Of a stretch of 64,000 nt of DNA, positions 3,581 through 45,456 are shown piece by piece. Each line of letters begins with the position of its first letter. The first letter of the stretch is position 1. The position numbers and the translations under genes are program-made. The notes beneath the pieces are model-generated. The model ran no database searches. It worked only from the letters and a program-made list of their open reading frames with translations, and had not been told where the DNA came from. The stretch is taken from positions 124,001-188,000 of the IMG/VR virus record IMGVR_UViG_3300030419_004471; one strand, given 5' to 3'.

Positions 3581-3596
3581 AATAATTTCCTTCCAC

Positions 3597-3631: not shown

Positions 3632-4684
3632 TTAGTTATTTATGCCACCTCTTGAAGAACCTCCAGAACTTCCTCCACTTGATACTCCACCGCTTGAACC
3701 TCGTGATGAACCTCCACTACTAACACCACTTGAACTTCCTCTACTAAAATTATTTGAACTTCCTCTACTGAAAGAATTAGAAGAGTTATTGATATTTGGA
3801 ATGGATGGTCTGGAGTTAATAGTGTTATTCCAATTATTAACTGGTCTACTATTATTGTTATTATTGTTAATAGGAACTACTGGTCTACCATTATTATATC
3901 TAATAACATTATTATTAGGTACATTATTTGGATTATTATAAACTCTAACATCATTAAACCTATCTCTTAATCTATCAACAATATTATCAATAACATTATT
4001 ATTATTGTTATTATTGTTATTTACATTATTTCTTGGTTTGTTATATCTTGTACTGATTAGGTTTTCTATATTACTATTACCATTATCTATAAATCTACTT
4101 CCTCTTCCTCCTCTAACATATGCAATATTTGTATTTTCTCTACTAGAATTCCAAATTACATTGTACCCTGGATTACCCCAAGGCCCATTGTACCAATTGT
4201 TCCATGGTCTGTAAGGTCTGTGCCAATTCCAAGCCCATCCATAATTCCAATTGTTCCATCCCCAATTATTATATCCCCATCCATAATTAAAGAATGGATA
4301 GTTAAATGCCCAATCATTCCAAAATTGATATCTATTCCAATAAACATCAAATGCTGTATATGGTCTCCAATAGCTAAAACTGTAGTTAGATGTGTACCAA
4401 CTATAAGGTTGGTCCATAGCATATTGTGCAAAATCCCATCTGAATCTTGAATCTGTTCTTAGTTTCCATCTTAATTGAGAATAAGATAAGGTATCTATTT
4501 TTACATCACTTGGTACTTCTAATGCTACTTCATGCGGCCCATATAATGGGTCGTGATACATAGTTGATAATTTAAATGATGCACATCCTGTAAATAAATT
4601 TAGTATAATCAATCCAGCTATTACACCAAGTACCTTAGCTATTGCATCAGCGTAACGTGTTGATTTTTTCTCTGATTGTGTCAT
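3632..4684 (-). CDS. lipoprotein with W/Y/N/G-rich and N/S/G-rich low-complexity tail
   Basis: LFTGC lipobox; GWGYNNWGWNNW segment; poly-N runs; RGSS repeats. Confidence 0.7.
   Translation of the reverse strand: MTQSEKKSTRYADAIAKVLGVIAGLIILNLFTGCASFKLSTMYHDPLYGPHEVALEVPSDVKIDTLSYSQLRWKLRTDSRFRWDFAQYAMDQPYSWYTSNYSFSYWRPYTAFDVYWNRYQFWNDWAFNYPFFNYGWGYNNWGWNNWNYGWAWNWHRPYRPWNNWYNGPWGNPGYNVIWNSSRENTNIAYVRGGRGSRFIDNGNSNIENLISTRYNKPRNNVNNNNNNNNNVIDNIVDRLRDRFNDVRVYNNPNNVPNNNVIRYNNGRPVVPINNNNNNSRPVNNWNNTINSRPSIPNINNSSNSFSRGSSNNFSRGSSSGVSSGGSSRGSSGGVSSGGSSGGSSRGGINN
3730..3769. repeat. 16-bp direct repeat ttgaacttcctctact (encodes SRGSS)
   Basis: Copies at 3730-3745 and 3754-3769. Confidence 0.75.
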
Positions 4685-9802: not shown

Positions 9803-10690
9803 TTATTTCCATAATCCCATTTCGGAATTACATCCTGCTTCTGCTATTTTTTTAAATTCTTCTCTTCTATCTATGCCAGGTACAAAATCTGTAAGATGTT
9901 TGTTATTTCTGTATTTATAGTTTTCACAAACTACTAAATTTTTTATTTTGAATTGAATTCCTTCTTTGTGATGTTCACACCACCACATTATATATGTATC
10001 TTCTAAACCATAGTGTCCAAATGATTCAGGAACAGTCACCTTATCTAATAGTTCTTTAGATAAACAAGTAAACCAACCACCAGCAAATTTCATTCTTGGT
10101 TGTCCTATCACATTATTATTTACTGTTTCTATTCCAATGTTTCCATTCTTAATCCCACAATCTACAAATGGGTCATTTGTTTTTTGATAACCTAATGGTT
10201 CATTTAGGTATTGTTCATTTACTAAACAATCCCAAGTTGAATCCCATATACGAACTATTTCAGGAGTAACCACCGATAGTGGATACTTATCTTTTATAGA
10301 TTTAATAGAACTATCAATATAAGCAAGAGTTCTTTCATCGAATATGATATCTGTATCTAACCAAATATGATAATCTACATCTTTGTGAGTTTTCCAAGTT
10401 TTTCTTCTTTTCGATACACAACCCAAAACTTCTGATTTATCTTCAACTCTAAAGTATTTGTTAGTAATCCAATCTGATTGTTTTCTAAGTTTATCAAACT
10501 TACCAAAAAAGTACTCCATAGGAATTTTACTATTTTCCCATAACGTTAATTCACCAGTTAATGCTAATGTTATATCTAAAATAAAATCTTTTTCATCGAT
10601 ATAACGAAATGCTTTTTGTAGTTGAATTAATGTTAATTCTAAATCATCTATCTCGTGTGGTAAACAAAATATGGAAATACAATACTTCAT
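9803..10690 (-). CDS. GT-A fold glycosyltransferase
   Basis: WLDTD DxD motif, GGWF, YGLED. Confidence 0.7.
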   Translation of the reverse strand: MKYCISIFCLPHEIDDLELTLIQLQKAFRYIDEKDFILDITLALTGELTLWENSKIPMEYFFGKFDKLRKQSDWITNKYFRVEDKSEVLGCVSKRRKTWKTHKDVDYHIWLDTDIIFDERTLAYIDSSIKSIKDKYPLSVVTPEIVRIWDSTWDCLVNEQYLNEPLGYQKTNDPFVDCGIKNGNIGIETVNNNVIGQPRMKFAGGWFTCLSKELLDKVTVPESFGHYGLEDTYIMWWCEHHKEGIQFKIKNLVVCENYKYRNNKHLTDFVPGIDRREEFKKIAEAGCNSEMGLWK

Positions 10691-41415: not shown

Positions 41416-41760
41416 CTATTTTGCCCACTTTTTTCGGTTAACAATTTGAGAGATAACACCATAGACTGAAAGGTCTTGATATGTATCTTCTATTGCTTCA
41501 CCAACCTCATCAGGTTGACCTTTTACAACCAATTGTTTTAACCTCTGAATCTTATCGTTTTTTCTAAACCAAAGACCAGTAAGCGCAACGTTAATATCAT
41601 CCGATGATTCCAATACTGAACCTACTGATATATTATCAGGTCCATAATTTCTTTGTTTCTTACAAAATGTATCGTACATCTCATCTAATATTTTTTTAAA
41701 TTCTTGAGTTGTTGCTGGAAATTTATCCTCACAATACTCAATCGCAGTTTGTTTTTTCAT
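41416..41760 (-). CDS. DUF1599 / nucleotide-modification-associated (MazG-like) protein
   Basis: KKQRNYG, NDKIQRL, EAIEDTYQDLSVY. Confidence 0.75.
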   Translation of the reverse strand: MKKQTAIEYCEDKFPATTQEFKKILDEMYDTFCKKQRNYGPDNISVGSVLESSDDINVALTGLWFRKNDKIQRLKQLVVKGQPDEVGEAIEDTYQDLSVYGVISQIVNRKKWAK

Positions 41761-41812: not shown

Positions 41813-44326
41813 TTAAAATGAAAAAAACTTTTCAGCTGTTTTTGTTGAGGATAAAACCTCACCCCATTTCATAGCCCCATAAAAATCCTCTAACTTCTTT
41901 AAAAGTTCTCTTTCAAAGATTTTATCATAATCAATATAGGTCTTTACTAAATCCATAATTTCCTTTGGGTCATCATATCCTTTGAATGCTACTCCATCTA
42001 ATCCCATTGGATTTTGTTTAAGATACACCCATTTAACCTTATCACCATTTTTCATAGGTTCATATTTCATCTCACATTTAAAATGAGATAATAGTTGATT
42101 AAATGCTATAGCTGCTTTTACGTGAGCTGGTGTGCCTGATACAAATTGGAACATTCTGATTTGTTTACCCTTTGGAAGATATTTTGTTAAATTCTTTACA
42201 GATGTATTTTTTGCAATATCTACAACATTCATCTGAGATAAATTATTTTTGAAATCATAAATCTTATCAGTAAGTTCAGTTTCCGTTTTACCTTTTAGAA
42301 TATCAATTAGAACTTCACTCATAAACTTTCTAAATGCCGCTGGATAAGATGACCTAACAACATCTAAGCCCTTTACATCTAATTTATTAACAGATACACC
42401 ATTATCAGATATAATCCATTGTGCGTATCGTTTTTTAGCTATCCAAATACCTGATTTAGAAACATATTCTTTTTTAATCTCAAATCTATGTTTATCAATA
42501 TTGAAAATTCTTTTTGCAAGTATATCATAAAAATCATTTAGATAATCTTGCATTTCTCCTGCTATTCCATTTACGAAACCAGCGATATCATCATCAGAAT
42601 TATCTCTCCAAGTTGGGTTTCTACTATCAAGTAAGGGAGTAGCACTAAAAAAAACGGAATCAGTGTCAATGTATATATTACTATCCAAATCGGGATTACC
42701 CAATTCTTTATTGTACCTGATGTTAGCCATGTCAGCAGTTGACTTAATAACTGTCTGTCCTGTCGTGGTAACAGCGGTAGCATTATCAACATCATAAAAC
42801 CTAAAGGCAGGAAGGCCAAGCACCCCATATAAAGAATTAAGTAGAATTTTTTGTACCAATTGACGTTTTTTATACCATTCATATTTTTCATTATCTCCGC
42901 TTTTTCCATATTGTTTCATTTTATTTTTGAACTCAACTCTTTGATTAAACCAAATATCTAAGATATCAGGTATACAACCAACAGTATCAGTTCTATATAA
43001 TACACCATTAGATGCAACTGAAAATTTTGAATTATCTAAATACTTTTTAAGATTTTCTTTTGTAATCGTATCTTCACCGATTGTATAAGTATCCTTACCA
43101 CCCTTTACAAACTCATTCGCATCCCAATCATTAATCTTACCAATCTTAGTTTCTGGTGAGATATTAATACTCATAATAATAGATGGATATAGAGAAGTTA
43201 AATCTAAATCATAAATCCATTCATATTTTCCAACGATAGGTGCTTTTACATATGCTCCGATAAACTTCTCCTCATTGTTATCTCTTAATGCTTGCATTCT
43301 CTCCTGTCTATCAGCTGGTTTATTTGGTGCTACGATACCTTTTCTTTTCAAATAACATAACAATGCTCCTTCTAAGTATTTTGATGAATAAACAAAATCT
43401 TCGTATGGAACGTGACCTGCATGACAAATACCTCTTGCCGTATCGATGAATTGTAACTTCTTATCCATATCAACTACCAACTCAACATCCACTAAGTTAT
43501 ACTCAATAAACTTCTCTATATCATCTCTAAATAATTGGTCTAAGTTTCCTTGATATTCTACCTTACCTCTACCTAACTCTTTTGATGCAATACTATCTAA
43601 ACGATAATTGTCTAATTCTGTATAAGTAAAGTTTTTGTAAAGTGCTAAATAATCTAAATAAGATACACCAGCCATAAAGAATCTCTTACGATAAGGTGAC
43701 CAGAAACATTCACCGATTGGTGATAATCTATTTGCGTTTCTTTTACCTATAACATTTTTTATTCTATTATAAAGATATGGTGTATCAAAGTAATCTATAT
43801 TCCATCCAGTAACAATAGTTGGATTAATATATTCATATAGTTCTAAATATTTTTCTAATAATTCTGCTTCACTTCTAAATGGTAGTACAATAGCTTTATC
43901 AGTTTTCTTATTTGATAAAACATTATCTTTATCTAAAACCAAAACATAATATTGATTGGTAGCTGAATCATGCAATGCTATAGAAGTAATTTCATTCTTA
44001 GCTTCTTGCATATCAGGTAAACCTGTTTCCATCTCTACCTCAATATCATATGTAAGAGTTATATGCCCTTCTGATGGTAAATCCGAATCAGTATATGTAT
44101 CTACTAAAACTCTAGTCGTTTCTGCAACATCTGATTCAAAAAGATTAGGATTATCTTTATTGAATTTATATATCTTAGTTAACCTATCTCCATACAAAGA
44201 TACACACTCACCATTTTCTGCTTTTTCATATGCATATCTTGTATAAGGGAAAGTTCTGTAACCTAATTTATCATCCCATAAGTGTATGAGATTCTTCTGT
44301 CTTTGGTAATATACGTTTTGGTACAT
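41813..44326 (-). CDS. 43: family B DNA polymerase (gp43-like)
   Basis: DIE exonuclease motif, GWN..FD, DLTSLYPS, KILLNSLYG, YIDTDS, KKRY. Confidence 0.97.
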   Translation of the reverse strand: MYQNVYYQRQKNLIHLWDDKLGYRTFPYTRYAYEKAENGECVSLYGDRLTKIYKFNKDNPNLFESDVAETTRVLVDTYTDSDLPSEGHITLTYDIEVEMETGLPDMQEAKNEITSIALHDSATNQYYVLVLDKDNVLSNKKTDKAIVLPFRSEAELLEKYLELYEYINPTIVTGWNIDYFDTPYLYNRIKNVIGKRNANRLSPIGECFWSPYRKRFFMAGVSYLDYLALYKNFTYTELDNYRLDSIASKELGRGKVEYQGNLDQLFRDDIEKFIEYNLVDVELVVDMDKKLQFIDTARGICHAGHVPYEDFVYSSKYLEGALLCYLKRKGIVAPNKPADRQERMQALRDNNEEKFIGAYVKAPIVGKYEWIYDLDLTSLYPSIIMSINISPETKIGKINDWDANEFVKGGKDTYTIGEDTITKENLKKYLDNSKFSVASNGVLYRTDTVGCIPDILDIWFNQRVEFKNKMKQYGKSGDNEKYEWYKKRQLVQKILLNSLYGVLGLPAFRFYDVDNATAVTTTGQTVIKSTADMANIRYNKELGNPDLDSNIYIDTDSVFFSATPLLDSRNPTWRDNSDDDIAGFVNGIAGEMQDYLNDFYDILAKRIFNIDKHRFEIKKEYVSKSGIWIAKKRYAQWIISDNGVSVNKLDVKGLDVVRSSYPAAFRKFMSEVLIDILKGKTETELTDKIYDFKNNLSQMNVVDIAKNTSVKNLTKYLPKGKQIRMFQFVSGTPAHVKAAIAFNQLLSHFKCEMKYEPMKNGDKVKWVYLKQNPMGLDGVAFKGYDDPKEIMDLVKTYIDYDKIFERELLKKLEDFYGAMKWGEVLSSTKTAEKFFSF
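42571..42909 (-). CDS. candidate overprinted (+1 frame) membrane protein within polB
   Basis: 112 stop-free codons, two to three TM segments, coinciding with atypical synonymous codons in polB. Confidence 0.45.
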   Translation of the reverse strand: MEKAEIMKNMNGIKNVNWYKKFYLILYMGCLAFLPLGFMMLIMLPLLPRQDRQLLSQLLTWLTSGTIKNWVIPIWIVIYTLTLIPFFLVLLPYLIVETQLGEIILMMISLVS

Positions 44327-45456
44327 TAACTATTTAATTGTTTATGAAGTTCTTTAATCATTTTATCTTCGTTATTGGATAATTGTTTAGCTCTTTCGAT
44401 TGAACGAAGTTCTTGTGTAAATCTAAATATATCATCATCCAACATTTTATCTAACATTTCAAAGAAATCTTTCTTTTTTGTGAAAAATAATCCATCTGGG
44501 TCTATTTCTCTATAACATAAAGAATCTTGAAATATCATTGGAGTACCATTCATCATACAATCAGTACCACTAACACTCCAACCATAATTTGTTTGTCTCA
44601 TCTGTACACCAACTTTACAATTTTGTAATCTTTCGTAGTATTCATGCTTTGGAACTTTTGTATTATCAATCCAAGATTCACTTGGTTTACCTTTAAGTTG
44701 TGGCACCCATAAAACAAAATCATCTCTTTGTTTTCTATATTCCTTCATAAGTTTTAAAAACGCAGGCCATCCTTTGTAACCAGCAGCCCTATGATTGAAT
44801 ACAATAACATTTCTTTTTTCGTTTGAAGGTTTTTCAACTATAAATTCTTTTGGTAATCCTAAATTCCATACTGTAAGAATATCATCTAATTTATTTACAA
44901 ATTCTTCAGTAAATGTTTCTTTAGCTTCTTCTAATACTCTATTCTTTTGGTCTTGTGTATTTAAATAACAAGTATCCATTTGAGATACTCCTAATAATTC
45001 TATAGGTAACCACATCCATTTTGCTTTACCCGGCCTTCTATCTGCTCCATTTGCCGATTTCATTTCCCACCAATGACAATAACCAATTATTTTTGTATCC
45101 ATATTCTTTTTATATCTACCAGTCTGAACCCAATCTGGTAAATGAGAATATATTACATCATAATCTATGTCTTTTGATAATTTTATTAAATCTAATGGAG
45201 GGAATGCTCTTTGATTCATCATATCACCACTAAATGGTGCAATATGTTGTTTTACATTTTCTAAATTAAGTTTTCTTACTGGTTTTGGTAATATTACATT
45301 CCAAAAGTAATCACCTAATTTATCCAATGCAATAATATGGTTGTATAAAACATCCACAAATGAATCTTTTTCAATACTACCAGCATTCGTGATATTTGGT
45401 ATCACCAACACTTTTCTAGCATCTTTGTAATCTATTTTAGTTTCCCAAAAACTCAT
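44326..45456 (-). CDS. GT-B glycosyltransferase, candidate DNA-modifying enzyme
   Basis: VFNHR...KGW..F; WSVSGTDCMMNGTP; translationally coupled to polB. Confidence 0.7.
   Translation of the reverse strand: MSFWETKIDYKDARKVLVIPNITNAGSIEKDSFVDVLYNHIIALDKLGDYFWNVILPKPVRKLNLENVKQHIAPFSGDMMNQRAFPPLDLIKLSKDIDYDVIYSHLPDWVQTGRYKKNMDTKIIGYCHWWEMKSANGADRRPGKAKWMWLPIELLGVSQMDTCYLNTQDQKNRVLEEAKETFTEEFVNKLDDILTVWNLGLPKEFIVEKPSNEKRNVIVFNHRAAGYKGWPAFLKLMKEYRKQRDDFVLWVPQLKGKPSESWIDNTKVPKHEYYERLQNCKVGVQMRQTNYGWSVSGTDCMMNGTPMIFQDSLCYREIDPDGLFFTKKKDFFEMLDKMLDDDIFRFTQELRSIERAKQLSNNEDKMIKELHKQLNS

Follow-up and report, generated by a model that had tools for sequence, protein, structure and literature searches.

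Introduction

Genes nested in another reading frame are textbook features of tiny phages and of a few lysis cassettes, whereas they are rarely demonstrated in large dsDNA phages, where genome space is not limiting, and gene callers discard them by design. One of the closest parallels is the lysis gene E of phiX174, a membrane protein of roughly 90 aa that is encoded wholly inside gene D in the +1 frame. It appears to have arisen by overprinting and owes its hydrophobicity to the third codon positions of the host gene becoming its second positions. In lambda, the o-spanin gene Rz1 is likewise a +1-frame gene fully embedded in another gene, Rz, of a dsDNA phage and has an envelope-associated product, typically a small proline-rich lipoprotein with a lipobox whose host gene is its functional partner. 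The S (envelope) gene of hepatitis B virus encodes a multi-helix membrane protein in the +1 frame entirely within the polymerase gene P, so that the two constrain each other (PMC9093120), although much of this overlap seems to lie on the tolerant spacer domain of a reverse transcriptase. Small phage proteins of about 70-100 aa with a basic N-terminus and two membrane helices include T4 Imm and Sp, which are likely made early, as well as class II holins and pinholins such as phage 21 S.

Here we describe a +1-frame ORF inside the polB gene of a marine T4-like phage, which very probably encodes a small two-helix membrane protein, although this inference rests on sequence comparison and not on direct evidence of translation. 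In contrast to phiX174 E, which has one transmembrane helix, lies in a scaffolding-protein gene of a 5.4-kb ssDNA phage and has a defined target (MraY), the ORF encodes two hydrophobic helices, its host gene encodes the catalytic core of a replicative polymerase in a 214-kb dsDNA phage, and no sequence similarity exists. In contrast to Rz1, no lipobox consensus is conserved: residues 27-30 read YMVC or YMGC, Cys30 is replaced by F, S or Y in some relatives, and PolB is functionally unrelated. In contrast to the hepatitis B virus overlap, the one described here covers the conserved motifs B and C of a family B DNA polymerase. The likeness to Imm, Sp and the class II holins is limited to size and hydropathy and, for Imm and Sp, presumed early expression. 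Full-text literature searches revealed no report of a nested gene in a T4-type polB.

Results

A +1-frame ORF spans motifs B to C of polB

The analyzed window is a stretch of 64,000 nucleotides (positions 124,001 to 188,000 of IMG/VR virus record IMGVR_UViG_3300030419_004471). Its polB gene overlaps a 112-codon ORF with an ATG start, offset by 1417 nt from the polB start and thus in the +1 frame. The ORF covers polB codons 473-586, including KILLNSLY (motif B) and IYIDTDSV (motif C). All protein features described in the original prediction are present. The locus is composed of the following features:

41813..44326 (-): polB, family B DNA polymerase of 837 aa and host gene of the overlap (Pfam DNA_pol_B, 7.6e-40; exonuclease domain, 2.7e-21); neighbors are a RecA/UvsX-like gene and a gp32-like gene
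42571..42909 (-): nested +1-frame ORF, 112 aa plus stop (TAA at 42571-42573), N-terminus MEKAEIMKNMNGIKNVNWYKK
42907..42909 (-): start codon ATG, built from the last two bases of polB Tyr473 (TAT) and the first base of Gly474 (GGA)
42916..42918 (-): upstream +1-frame stop (TGA) that bounds the ORF, two codons before the ATG
42882..42934 (-): putative translation-initiation region, an A-rich, unstructured 51-nt window around the ATG
42847..42906 (-): basic N-terminal segment (residues 2-21), variable but lysine/arginine-rich in the alignment
42769..42846 (-): hydrophobic helix 1 (residues 22-47, FYLILYMGCLAFLPLGFMMLIMLPLL), the most constrained part
42751..42768 (-): charged loop PRQDRQ (residues 48-53)
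42700..42750 (-): amphipathic stretch (residues 54-70, LLSQLLTWLTSGTIKNW), with L54, L55, W61, L62 and S64 invariant in the 22-sequence alignment
42622..42699 (-): hydrophobic helix 2 (residues 71-96)
42574..42633 (-): C-terminal extension particular to this lineage (residues 93-112)
42716..42865 (-): rare-codon cluster in polB (codons 488-537)
42707..42859 (-): core of suppressed synonymous variation in polB (codons 490-540)

Within the ORF, polB uses GGG GTG CTT GGC CTT CCT GCC, AGG, ACC, ACC ACG, CCC, TCC and CCC, each of which accounts for 3-14% of its amino acid in this genome. Codons 488-537 hold 18 rare codons per 50, compared to a genome mean of 4.3 and a 99th percentile of 11, and only 0.03% of windows of the genome reach 18. 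Thirteen dicodons in the ORF could give a +1 stop with the usual TTA/GTA/ATA and all of them avoid it. However, GGG, GTG, GGC, GCC and AGG are not needed for stop avoidance but change the +1 amino acid instead. Given the PolB protein and the codon usage of the genome, the exact probability of the frame being open here is 2.1e-6, and it was open in 0 of 20,000 polB resamplings. The ORF is the longest of 6416 +1 open stretches in the 265 crude genes of the genome, followed by stretches of 100 and 83 codons. A geometric expectation makes 114 codons look extreme, but the real distribution is heavy-tailed, and a stretch of at least 114 codons somewhere in the genome arises in 37% of resampled genomes. 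These come mostly from one low-complexity gene, whereas all other genes together give about 0.11 per genome. The evidence from this single genome is therefore only suggestive, and we did not rest the case on length.

The ORF is retained in divergent relatives

Of 64 unique relatives found with PolB itself, 28 have the +1 frame open, and of 98 unique related polB genes from metagenomic viral contigs obtained after a second search, 63 are open. The number of stops per sequence in codons 473-564 is distributed as 0:63, 1:0, 2:1, 3:1, 4:5, 5:9, 6:10, 7:9, so that the two states are sharply bimodal rather than a drift continuum. ORF-bearing relatives extend down to about 75% PolB identity, and the flank synonymous codon identity among open sequences has a median of 0.60, with saturation at about 0.5. 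A neutral simulation on the flank tree starting from an open ancestor left a mean of 1.6 of 64 tips open (maximum 11 in 1000 runs). Of the five alternative frames, only the +1 sense frame is open in all 63. Most relatives stop at polB codons 565/566, giving 92-93 aa (54 of 63), whereas the 112-aa form occurs in 6 of 63.

The ATG is the first one after the upstream +1 stop in 62 of 63 ORF-bearing relatives and is relocated two codons downstream in the remaining one. The upstream stop lies 2-4 codons before the ATG in 62 of 63. Codon 474 is GGA/GGG in 62 of 63, compared to GGT in 35 of 35 stop-bearing relatives. The mean MFE of the window around the ATG is -0.33 kcal/mol, compared to -5.35 for other polB windows, and its A content is 59% in ORF-bearing relatives, whereas stop-bearing relatives give -2.72 kcal/mol and 44% A. 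Although no Shine-Dalgarno motif precedes the ATG, only 52 of 265 genes in this genome have a Shine-Dalgarno-like motif and upstream regions are about 50% A, so that the context resembles that of the other gene starts.

Constraint on synonymous sites follows the +1 protein

Observed/expected synonymous differences in polB fall to 0.45-0.48 at codons 495-530 in ORF-bearing relatives, the lowest in the gene, compared to 0.85-0.9 in stop-bearing relatives. With each region on its own tree, the rate of polB-synonymous, +1-changing substitutions in the core is 1.46, against flanks of 3.9-4.5. The doubly synonymous rate in the core is 3.41 (flanks 3.8-4.2) and thus exceeds that of the +1-changing sites (binomial p = 0.015), although this comparison rests on only about 3 sites (codons 490, 495, 499). 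Stop-creating synonymous changes are 0 per 11 opportunities in the core and 1 per 13.9 in the whole ORF, against flank rates of 3.5-4.4. Since the open class was defined by having no stops, this contrast is partly circular, which is mitigated by the absence of any one-stop sequence. Stop-bearing relatives show no reduction. Among polB-nonsynonymous changes in the core, +1-changing ones are not rarer than +1-silent ones (17 per 232 against 3 per 101), but the counts are tiny.

By sub-segment on one tree, the constraint begins at the ATG and ends at the common stop: synonymous rates are 4.66 upstream, 2.85 in the N-terminus, 1.23 in helix 1, 2.20 in the loop, 2.52 in helix 2, 3.01 in the tail and 4.96 downstream. 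In helix 1, where codons are near-invariant, the polB-synonymous, +1-changing rate is 1.23 against flanks of 4.7-5.0, the doubly synonymous rate is 3.81 and stop-creating changes are 0 per 7.0 opportunities. In helix 2 nucleotides turn over but only 1 stop-creating change occurs per 2.9 opportunities. Leucine codons at risk of making a stop vary among CTT/TTG/CTC/CTG but are never TTA. The helices use NNT codons and the loop uses A/G-ending codons, with +1 residues of the loop varying only among Q/R/K/D/P across relatives.

The original prediction cautioned that +1 frames of T-ending codons are naturally hydrophobic. This caveat is real but insufficient, as mean Kyte-Doolittle hydropathy is 2.04 for helix 1 and 2.26 for helix 2 in ORF-bearing relatives but 0.00 and 0.75, respectively, for the same segments in the others. 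Still, accepted changes in helix 2 are not conservative in hydropathy (mean |dKD| 4.94).

Homology and family membership

A profile search of 1.84 billion representative proteins revealed no homologue outside polB, apart from calls of this same ORF. No Pfam or PHROG match was better than E = 0.03, with none to a holin, spanin or Imm family, and Atlas features were uninformative. Two hydropathy peaks of at least 1.6 over 19 residues would suit a class II holin or pinholin, and the predicted structure is all-helical but of low confidence (AlphaFold pLDDT 61). However, the ORF does not lie in a lysis cassette and there is no adjacent endolysin: it is nested in polB, between a glycosyltransferase-like gene and a DUF1599 gene in the replication module. 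The dual-start-like M1/M7/M10 of this phage is not conserved, since M7 is confined to this phage in the 22-sequence alignment, M10 occurs in only a minority and most relatives have a single N-terminal Met.

Sigma-70-like sites are no more frequent than in shuffles (17 against 18.6), and the recurrent TATTTATAG motif is absent from polB, giving no indication of an internal promoter. In public runs only DNA metagenomes hold the phage. One 188-nt contig from a library labelled metatranscriptomic, but probably DNA, covers 42801-42988 and does not allow conclusions about expression.

Discussion

The original prediction that polB contains an overprinted gene for a small membrane protein, dual-coded with the active-site region, is supported, and it passes the test proposed with it, i.e. 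retention of the +1 ORF together with suppressed synonymous variation in exactly those relatives. The outcome that had been named as refuting, relatives with +1 stops and normal synonymous rates, also exists but applies to a distinct subset of 35 sequences, which look like losses or replaced patches. The frame, its start codon and its hydrophobic pattern are preserved by purifying selection in a large, diverse group of uncultured aquatic T4-like phages, at the cost of rare codons in polB. We conclude with high confidence that the +1 frame of polB codons 473-565 (to codon 585 in this phage) is a real protein-coding gene under selection, encoding a small helical-hairpin membrane protein with a basic N-terminus, two hydrophobic helices and a charged loop, even though its product has not been demonstrated. 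Translation is inferred to occur from the polB message by internal, Shine-Dalgarno-independent initiation at the ATG formed by Tyr473-Gly474. As polB is probably an early or middle gene in T4-type phages, the protein would be made early and inserted in the host cytoplasmic membrane. Because it is repeatedly dispensable, an accessory role in host interaction appears more likely than a core one. Superinfection exclusion or immunity in the manner of T4 Imm/Sp, or control of lysis timing, are the leading guesses, but any particular function remains doubtful. The same holds for the holin/antiholin, exclusion or replication-anchor functions originally proposed.

Three alternatives appear improbable to us. 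A nucleotide-level element, such as an RNA structure, a regulatory or protein-binding site, a replication origin or a site protected from a nuclease, could constrain synonymous sites and leave the open frame as a by-product. Codons 494-536 are indeed nearly invariant at the nucleotide level in ORF-bearing relatives, and the constraint is deepest over only about 130-150 nt rather than the whole ORF. However, the region folds no better than shuffles (z = +0.83), there is no Rfam match and the consensus fold is weak without a compensatory pair, albeit covariation tests have no power with so little variation. Furthermore, doubly synonymous sites inside the invariant block change at about the flank rate, and variation follows +1 amino-acid classes (Q/R/K in the loop, F/Y and V/A/G in helix 1). 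In the loop and helix 2 nucleotides turn over at about half the neutral rate, yet only 1 stop-creating change is seen per 6.9 opportunities and hydrophobicity is kept. The conserved ATG and second codon also speak against such an element. They also disfavor programmed +1 frameshifting from polB, which would fuse a truncated PolB N-terminal part (exonuclease domain) to a membrane anchor. In favor of frameshifting, the strongest constraint starts around codon 488-494, downstream of the ATG, rare codons that could pause ribosomes (CGT, AGG, GGG) cluster here, no Shine-Dalgarno motif is present, and two database sequences show frame-fused products, though these may be errors. Yet the ATG is kept in 62 of 63 and relocated when lost, even where PolB changes Tyr to His, the N-terminal segment is constrained, the start window is unusually unstructured and A-rich as at the true gene starts of this genome, and no conserved slippery motif was noticed in the codon tables, although this was not searched for formally.

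The third alternative is a chance open frame carried on a young recombining patch, spread for example by gene conversion or as a nuclease-resistant recoded variant, of which the recombinant patch is partly right for some relatives. The region tree and the flank tree disagree, within-class identity exceeds the flanks mainly in codons 474-520, and long +1 open runs are not rare in a single genome. Sister pairs of the numbered polB relatives (L011/L026 and L021/L016) share flanks at 0.80-0.90 synonymous identity but only 0.30-0.44 in codons 474-565, with identical PolB residues, so that the patch was clearly exchanged. This mosaicism also complicates tree-based counts. It does not, however, explain the constraint within ORF-bearing sequences. 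Their region nucleotide identity to this phage falls to 0.74-0.84, and distant pairs are at flank-level or lower synonymous identity in codons 520-565 (0.49-0.50), yet none of the 63 has a stop. The absence of a reduced rate at doubly synonymous sites and the bimodal stop count point in the same direction. Escape from a homing endonuclease would fit the different history of the segment and its flanks, but no such gene flanks polB in the window and no relative has an intron or intein in polB. All fetched polB genes are uninterrupted, except for a premature stop in L071 and frame switches in L154.

The ORF is absent from the nearest outgroups: Mel-JY01, L162 and L163 have stops. On rooted trees the open state is basal with stop-bearing lineages nested inside it. 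We infer that the ORF arose de novo on the stem of this phage group. We consider it likely that a protein-coding gene, whose early-made product would form a wholly new family with a host-interaction role, was born inside the catalytic palm (motifs B to C) of a replicative family B DNA polymerase and has since been maintained by selection across a widespread group of marine and freshwater T4-like phages. This would show that even the most conserved, catalytically essential part of a polymerase can host a new gene, and would add an abundant, uncharacterized membrane protein family to aquatic viromes. PolB is a common marker gene for T4-like phage diversity, and this segment violates the assumption that its synonymous sites are neutral and tree-like.

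Natural carriers and non-carriers differ almost only at polB-synonymous sites and thus offer a clean natural experiment on de novo gene birth, dual-coding conflict and gene loss. The two proteins appear to constrain each other: in ORF-bearing sequences polB is held to rare codons and shows almost no variation at residues 517 (Thr in 24 of 27), 521 (Thr) and 549 (Ser), which vary in relatives without the ORF. The conflict seems to be resolved repeatedly by loss of the nested gene, in part by recombinational replacement of the segment with a copy that is amino-acid-identical but differently coded. Simple relaxation can be rejected as the origin of the stop-bearing relatives L016/17/26/27/31-33/36 nested among carriers, because their segment is far more diverged than their flanks, but it remains plausible for L057/66/70, whose +1 translation still resembles the ORF.

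The nested ORF and its host gene

The genome comprises 213,601 bp with 31% G+C and was found in marine metagenomes. Coding density is about 94% and 263 of 265 crudely called genes lie on the minus strand. Its replication module is T4-like, with a RecA/UvsX-like gene, a gp32-like gene and a family B DNA polymerase. The features in and around the polymerase gene are as follows:

44326-45456 (-), glycosyltransferase-like gene upstream of polB, ending at the base where polB begins, so that the two overlap by one base
41813-44326 (-), polB, 837 aa
42571-42909 (-), nested ORF, 112 aa, starting 1417 nt into polB and thus in the +1 frame
41416-41760, 114-aa DUF1599 (nucleotide-modification-associated) protein downstream of polB

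The nested ORF put forward in the original prediction is real. It covers polB codons 473-586, including motif B (KILLNSLY) and motif C (IYIDTDSV), and its translation has the layout that had been described: a basic N-terminus, a 26-residue hydrophobic helix, the sequence PRQDRQ, an amphipathic stretch, a second hydrophobic helix and a hydrophobic tail. The claim that polB switches to rare codons in this stretch is also correct. Codons 488-537 of polB hold 18 codons that each serve under 15% of their amino acid, whereas the genome mean is 4.3 per 50 codons and only 0.03% of windows reach 18. Comparable or higher densities (16-20 per 50 codons) were seen in three adjacent genes at positions 100389-101712 of the genome, which may be recently acquired or represent further dual coding. 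Thirteen dicodons could form a +1 stop with the preferred TTA/GTA/ATA and all avoid it. Several other rare codons (GGG, GTG, GGC, GCC, AGG) are not needed for stop avoidance and instead set the +1 amino acid.

The ORF is the longest of 6416 +1 open stretches in the 265 genes. The exact probability that this stretch is open, given the PolB sequence and genome codon usage, is 2.1e-6, and it was open in 0 of 20,000 polB resamplings. However, when all genes were resampled, a +1 run of at least 114 codons arose somewhere in 37% of trials. These runs come mainly from one gene at 3632-4684 (-) encoding a 350-aa low-complexity protein rich in W, N, G and S, whose N-terminal hydrophobic segment ends in LFTGC and resembles a lipoprotein signal. 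Its composition alone produces +1 and antisense open stretches of 100-129 codons, which dominate the genome-wide off-frame ORF statistics, while the remaining genes give about 0.11 such runs per genome. The evidence from the single genome is therefore suggestive but not decisive.

Retention of the ORF among relatives

A PolB-based scan of viral contigs returned 80 loci at 75-100% amino-acid identity, 64 of them unique. Of these, 28 have no +1 stop over codons 473-564 and share a recognisable peptide with the consensus MEKVEIKKNTNGIKNVSWFRRFYLTLYMVCLVFLPLGSMMLIMLPLLPQRDRQLLNQLLIWLTSSTIRSLVLLMLTLIYTLILILYFSQQFLY, whereas the rest carry several stops. A second scan with a profile of the peptide found 126 loci, of which 80 were retrieved and 42 were new. 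Pooled, 98 unique sequences cover codons 330-700, and the number of stops per sequence is sharply bimodal (0:63, 1:0, 2:1, 3:1, 4:5, 5:9, 6:10, 7:9). The second search favoured ORF-like sequences, although sequences with one stop would still have been found.

Among the 63 open sequences the ORF is 92-93 aa long in 54 and 112 aa in 6, including this phage. The first ATG after the upstream stop is the one built from Tyr473/Gly474 in 62 of 63, and it is kept even where PolB has His473 (CAT). In the one sequence that lost it, an ATG appears two codons downstream. Codon 474 is GGA or GGG in 62 of 63 open sequences but GGT in all 35 stop-bearing sequences. Of the five alternative frames only +1 sense is open in all 63, and every other frame has at least two stops in every sequence.

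Retention of the open frame is not explained by descent alone. At same-amino-acid sites in the flanks, open sequences share the codon at a median of 0.60, with saturation at about 0.5, but in codons 490-540 they share it at 0.82, where stop-bearing sequences share it at 0.65. We simulated synonymous turnover on the flank tree, starting from an open ancestor and calibrated on flank divergence. This left a mean of 1.6 of 64 tips open (maximum 11 in 1000 runs), compared to 28 observed.

Synonymous constraint and its nature

A Synplot-like profile gave observed/expected synonymous differences of 0.45-0.48 at polB codons 495-530 in open sequences, the lowest value in the gene, whereas stop-bearing sequences gave 0.85-0.9. 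We then counted changes by parsimony in the 63 open sequences, giving each region its own tree, and classified each change by its effect in both frames. In the core (codons 490-540), polB-synonymous changes that alter the +1 protein occurred at 1.46 per opportunity, compared to 3.9-4.5 in the flanks. Changes synonymous in both frames occurred at 3.41, compared to 3.8-4.2 in the flanks. Within the core, the difference between doubly synonymous and +1-changing sites has a binomial p of 0.015, but this test rests on only about three sites (codons 490, 495 and 499). Changes that are polB-synonymous and create a +1 stop numbered 0 per 11 opportunities in the core and 1 per 13.9 over the whole ORF, against flank rates of 3.5-4.4. 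It should be noted that the open class is defined by absence of stops and that the parsimony counts ignore recombination.

By segment, on one tree from the ORF region, the polB-synonymous rate is 4.66 upstream of the ATG, 2.85 in the N-terminus, 1.23 in helix 1, 2.20 in the loop, 2.52 in helix 2, 3.01 in the tail and 4.96 downstream. The constrained span therefore matches the ORF. Stop-bearing sequences show no reduction in any class.

The codon choice at individual positions shows the logic of this constraint. Helix codons are NNT, which puts T at +1 position 2 and gives hydrophobic residues, whereas loop codons end in A or G, giving Q/R/D/K. Leucines at risk of creating a stop alternate among CTT/TTG/CTC/CTG but are never TTA. 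The sites that do vary inside the frozen block are either silent in +1 (CTA/TTA at codon 495) or conservative (F/Y, R/K, V/A/G). Mean hydropathy of the two helices is 2.04 and 2.26 in open sequences, but the same segments give 0.00 and 0.75 in the others, which answers the caveat of the original prediction that +1 frames are hydrophobic anyway.

Origin, loss and mosaicism

The nearest cultured phage is Microcystis phage Mel-JY01 (53-54% PolB identity). This phage and two further outgroup contigs (L162, L163) have +1 stops in this region. In PolB trees built with the overlap masked and rooted on these outgroups, the open state is basal in the ingroup and four stop-bearing groups of relatives are nested within it: L057/66/70, L016/17/27, L026/31/32/33/36 and a 24-tip clade. 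One gain followed by several losses is the most parsimonious reading, although the rooting rests on a long branch. No protein outside this polB segment was found to resemble the ORF in a search of 1.84 billion representatives, which gave only two hits, one a call of this same ORF and one a frame-switched polB fragment.

L057/66/70 look like decay in place, as their +1 translation still resembles the ORF but has lost the ATG and gained 2-4 stops. In contrast, L016/17/26/27/31-33/36 share flanks with open sisters at 0.80-0.90 synonymous identity but only 0.30-0.44 in codons 474-565, which is below saturation, while their PolB residues there are almost identical to those of their sisters. In these sequences the segment (polB codons ~430-580, about locus 2290-2740) was replaced by recombination with a long-diverged, ORF-less copy, the donor of which is not close to the one big-clade member compared (L049; 0.53-0.62). 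The alternative of a recombinant patch, also raised in the original prediction, is thus real in the family, but it describes how the ORF is lost or moved and not why it is conserved.

Possible expression and function

Inside polB there is no promoter-like signal above chance, so the polB message is the likely template for the nested ORF. The motif TATTTATAG, possibly a phage promoter motif, occurs 8 times in the window (at 3596, 4939, 5489, 9586, 48526 and 63869 on the minus strand and at 9912 and 61582 on the plus strand) against 2.8 expected, and elsewhere in the genome it sits within 30 nt upstream of several start codons, but it is absent from polB. Only 52 of 265 genes in this genome have a Shine-Dalgarno-like motif, and upstream regions are about 50% A. 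The 51-nt window around the nested ATG is 59% A and essentially unstructured in open sequences, with an MFE of -0.33 kcal/mol compared to -5.35 for other polB windows, whereas stop-bearing sequences give -2.72 kcal/mol and 44% A. Although direct evidence of translation is lacking, this fits internal, leader-structure-dependent initiation. A programmed +1 frameshift is a less likely alternative, given the conserved ATG and the constrained N-terminus. Still, two database sequences switch between the nested-ORF frame and the polB frame inside the overlap, giving fused products: protein P0003 and the relative L154 (IMGVR_UViG_3300046170_000405, around locus 2001-2270), which has a 368-aa open frame that starts as the nested protein and continues as the PolB C-terminus. 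These could reflect either an assembly indel or a real frameshift.

No family, fold or feature search gave a lead to the function of the product. Given its anatomy (basic N-terminus, two helices, charged loop), its early expression with polB as presumed from T4, and its repeated dispensability, we favor an accessory role in the cytoplasmic membrane. Superinfection exclusion or immunity, or control of lysis timing, are possible candidates, but each of them remains a tentative guess.

The mechanism of origin and the type of product match phiX174 E in D and lambda Rz1 in Rz, and the pairing of a polymerase with a membrane protein recalls HBV S in P. The present case differs in that the protein family is new, the host gene is the catalytic core of a replicative family B polymerase, the genome is that of a large dsDNA phage, and natural carriers and non-carriers coexist. 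No prior report was found in three literature searches.

A further observation concerns polB codons 517, 521 and 549 (window ~42678-42777). In ORF-bearing sequences the PolB residues at these positions are Thr (24 of 27), Thr and Ser (both 27 of 27), but they vary in stop-bearing sequences (Glu/Thr, Leu/Thr and Tyr/Ser/Phe, respectively), and all three outgroups have Glu and Leu at the first two. A CTA/TTA codon for Leu521 would put a TAA in the +1 frame. This suggests that the nested gene restricts the polymerase sequence.
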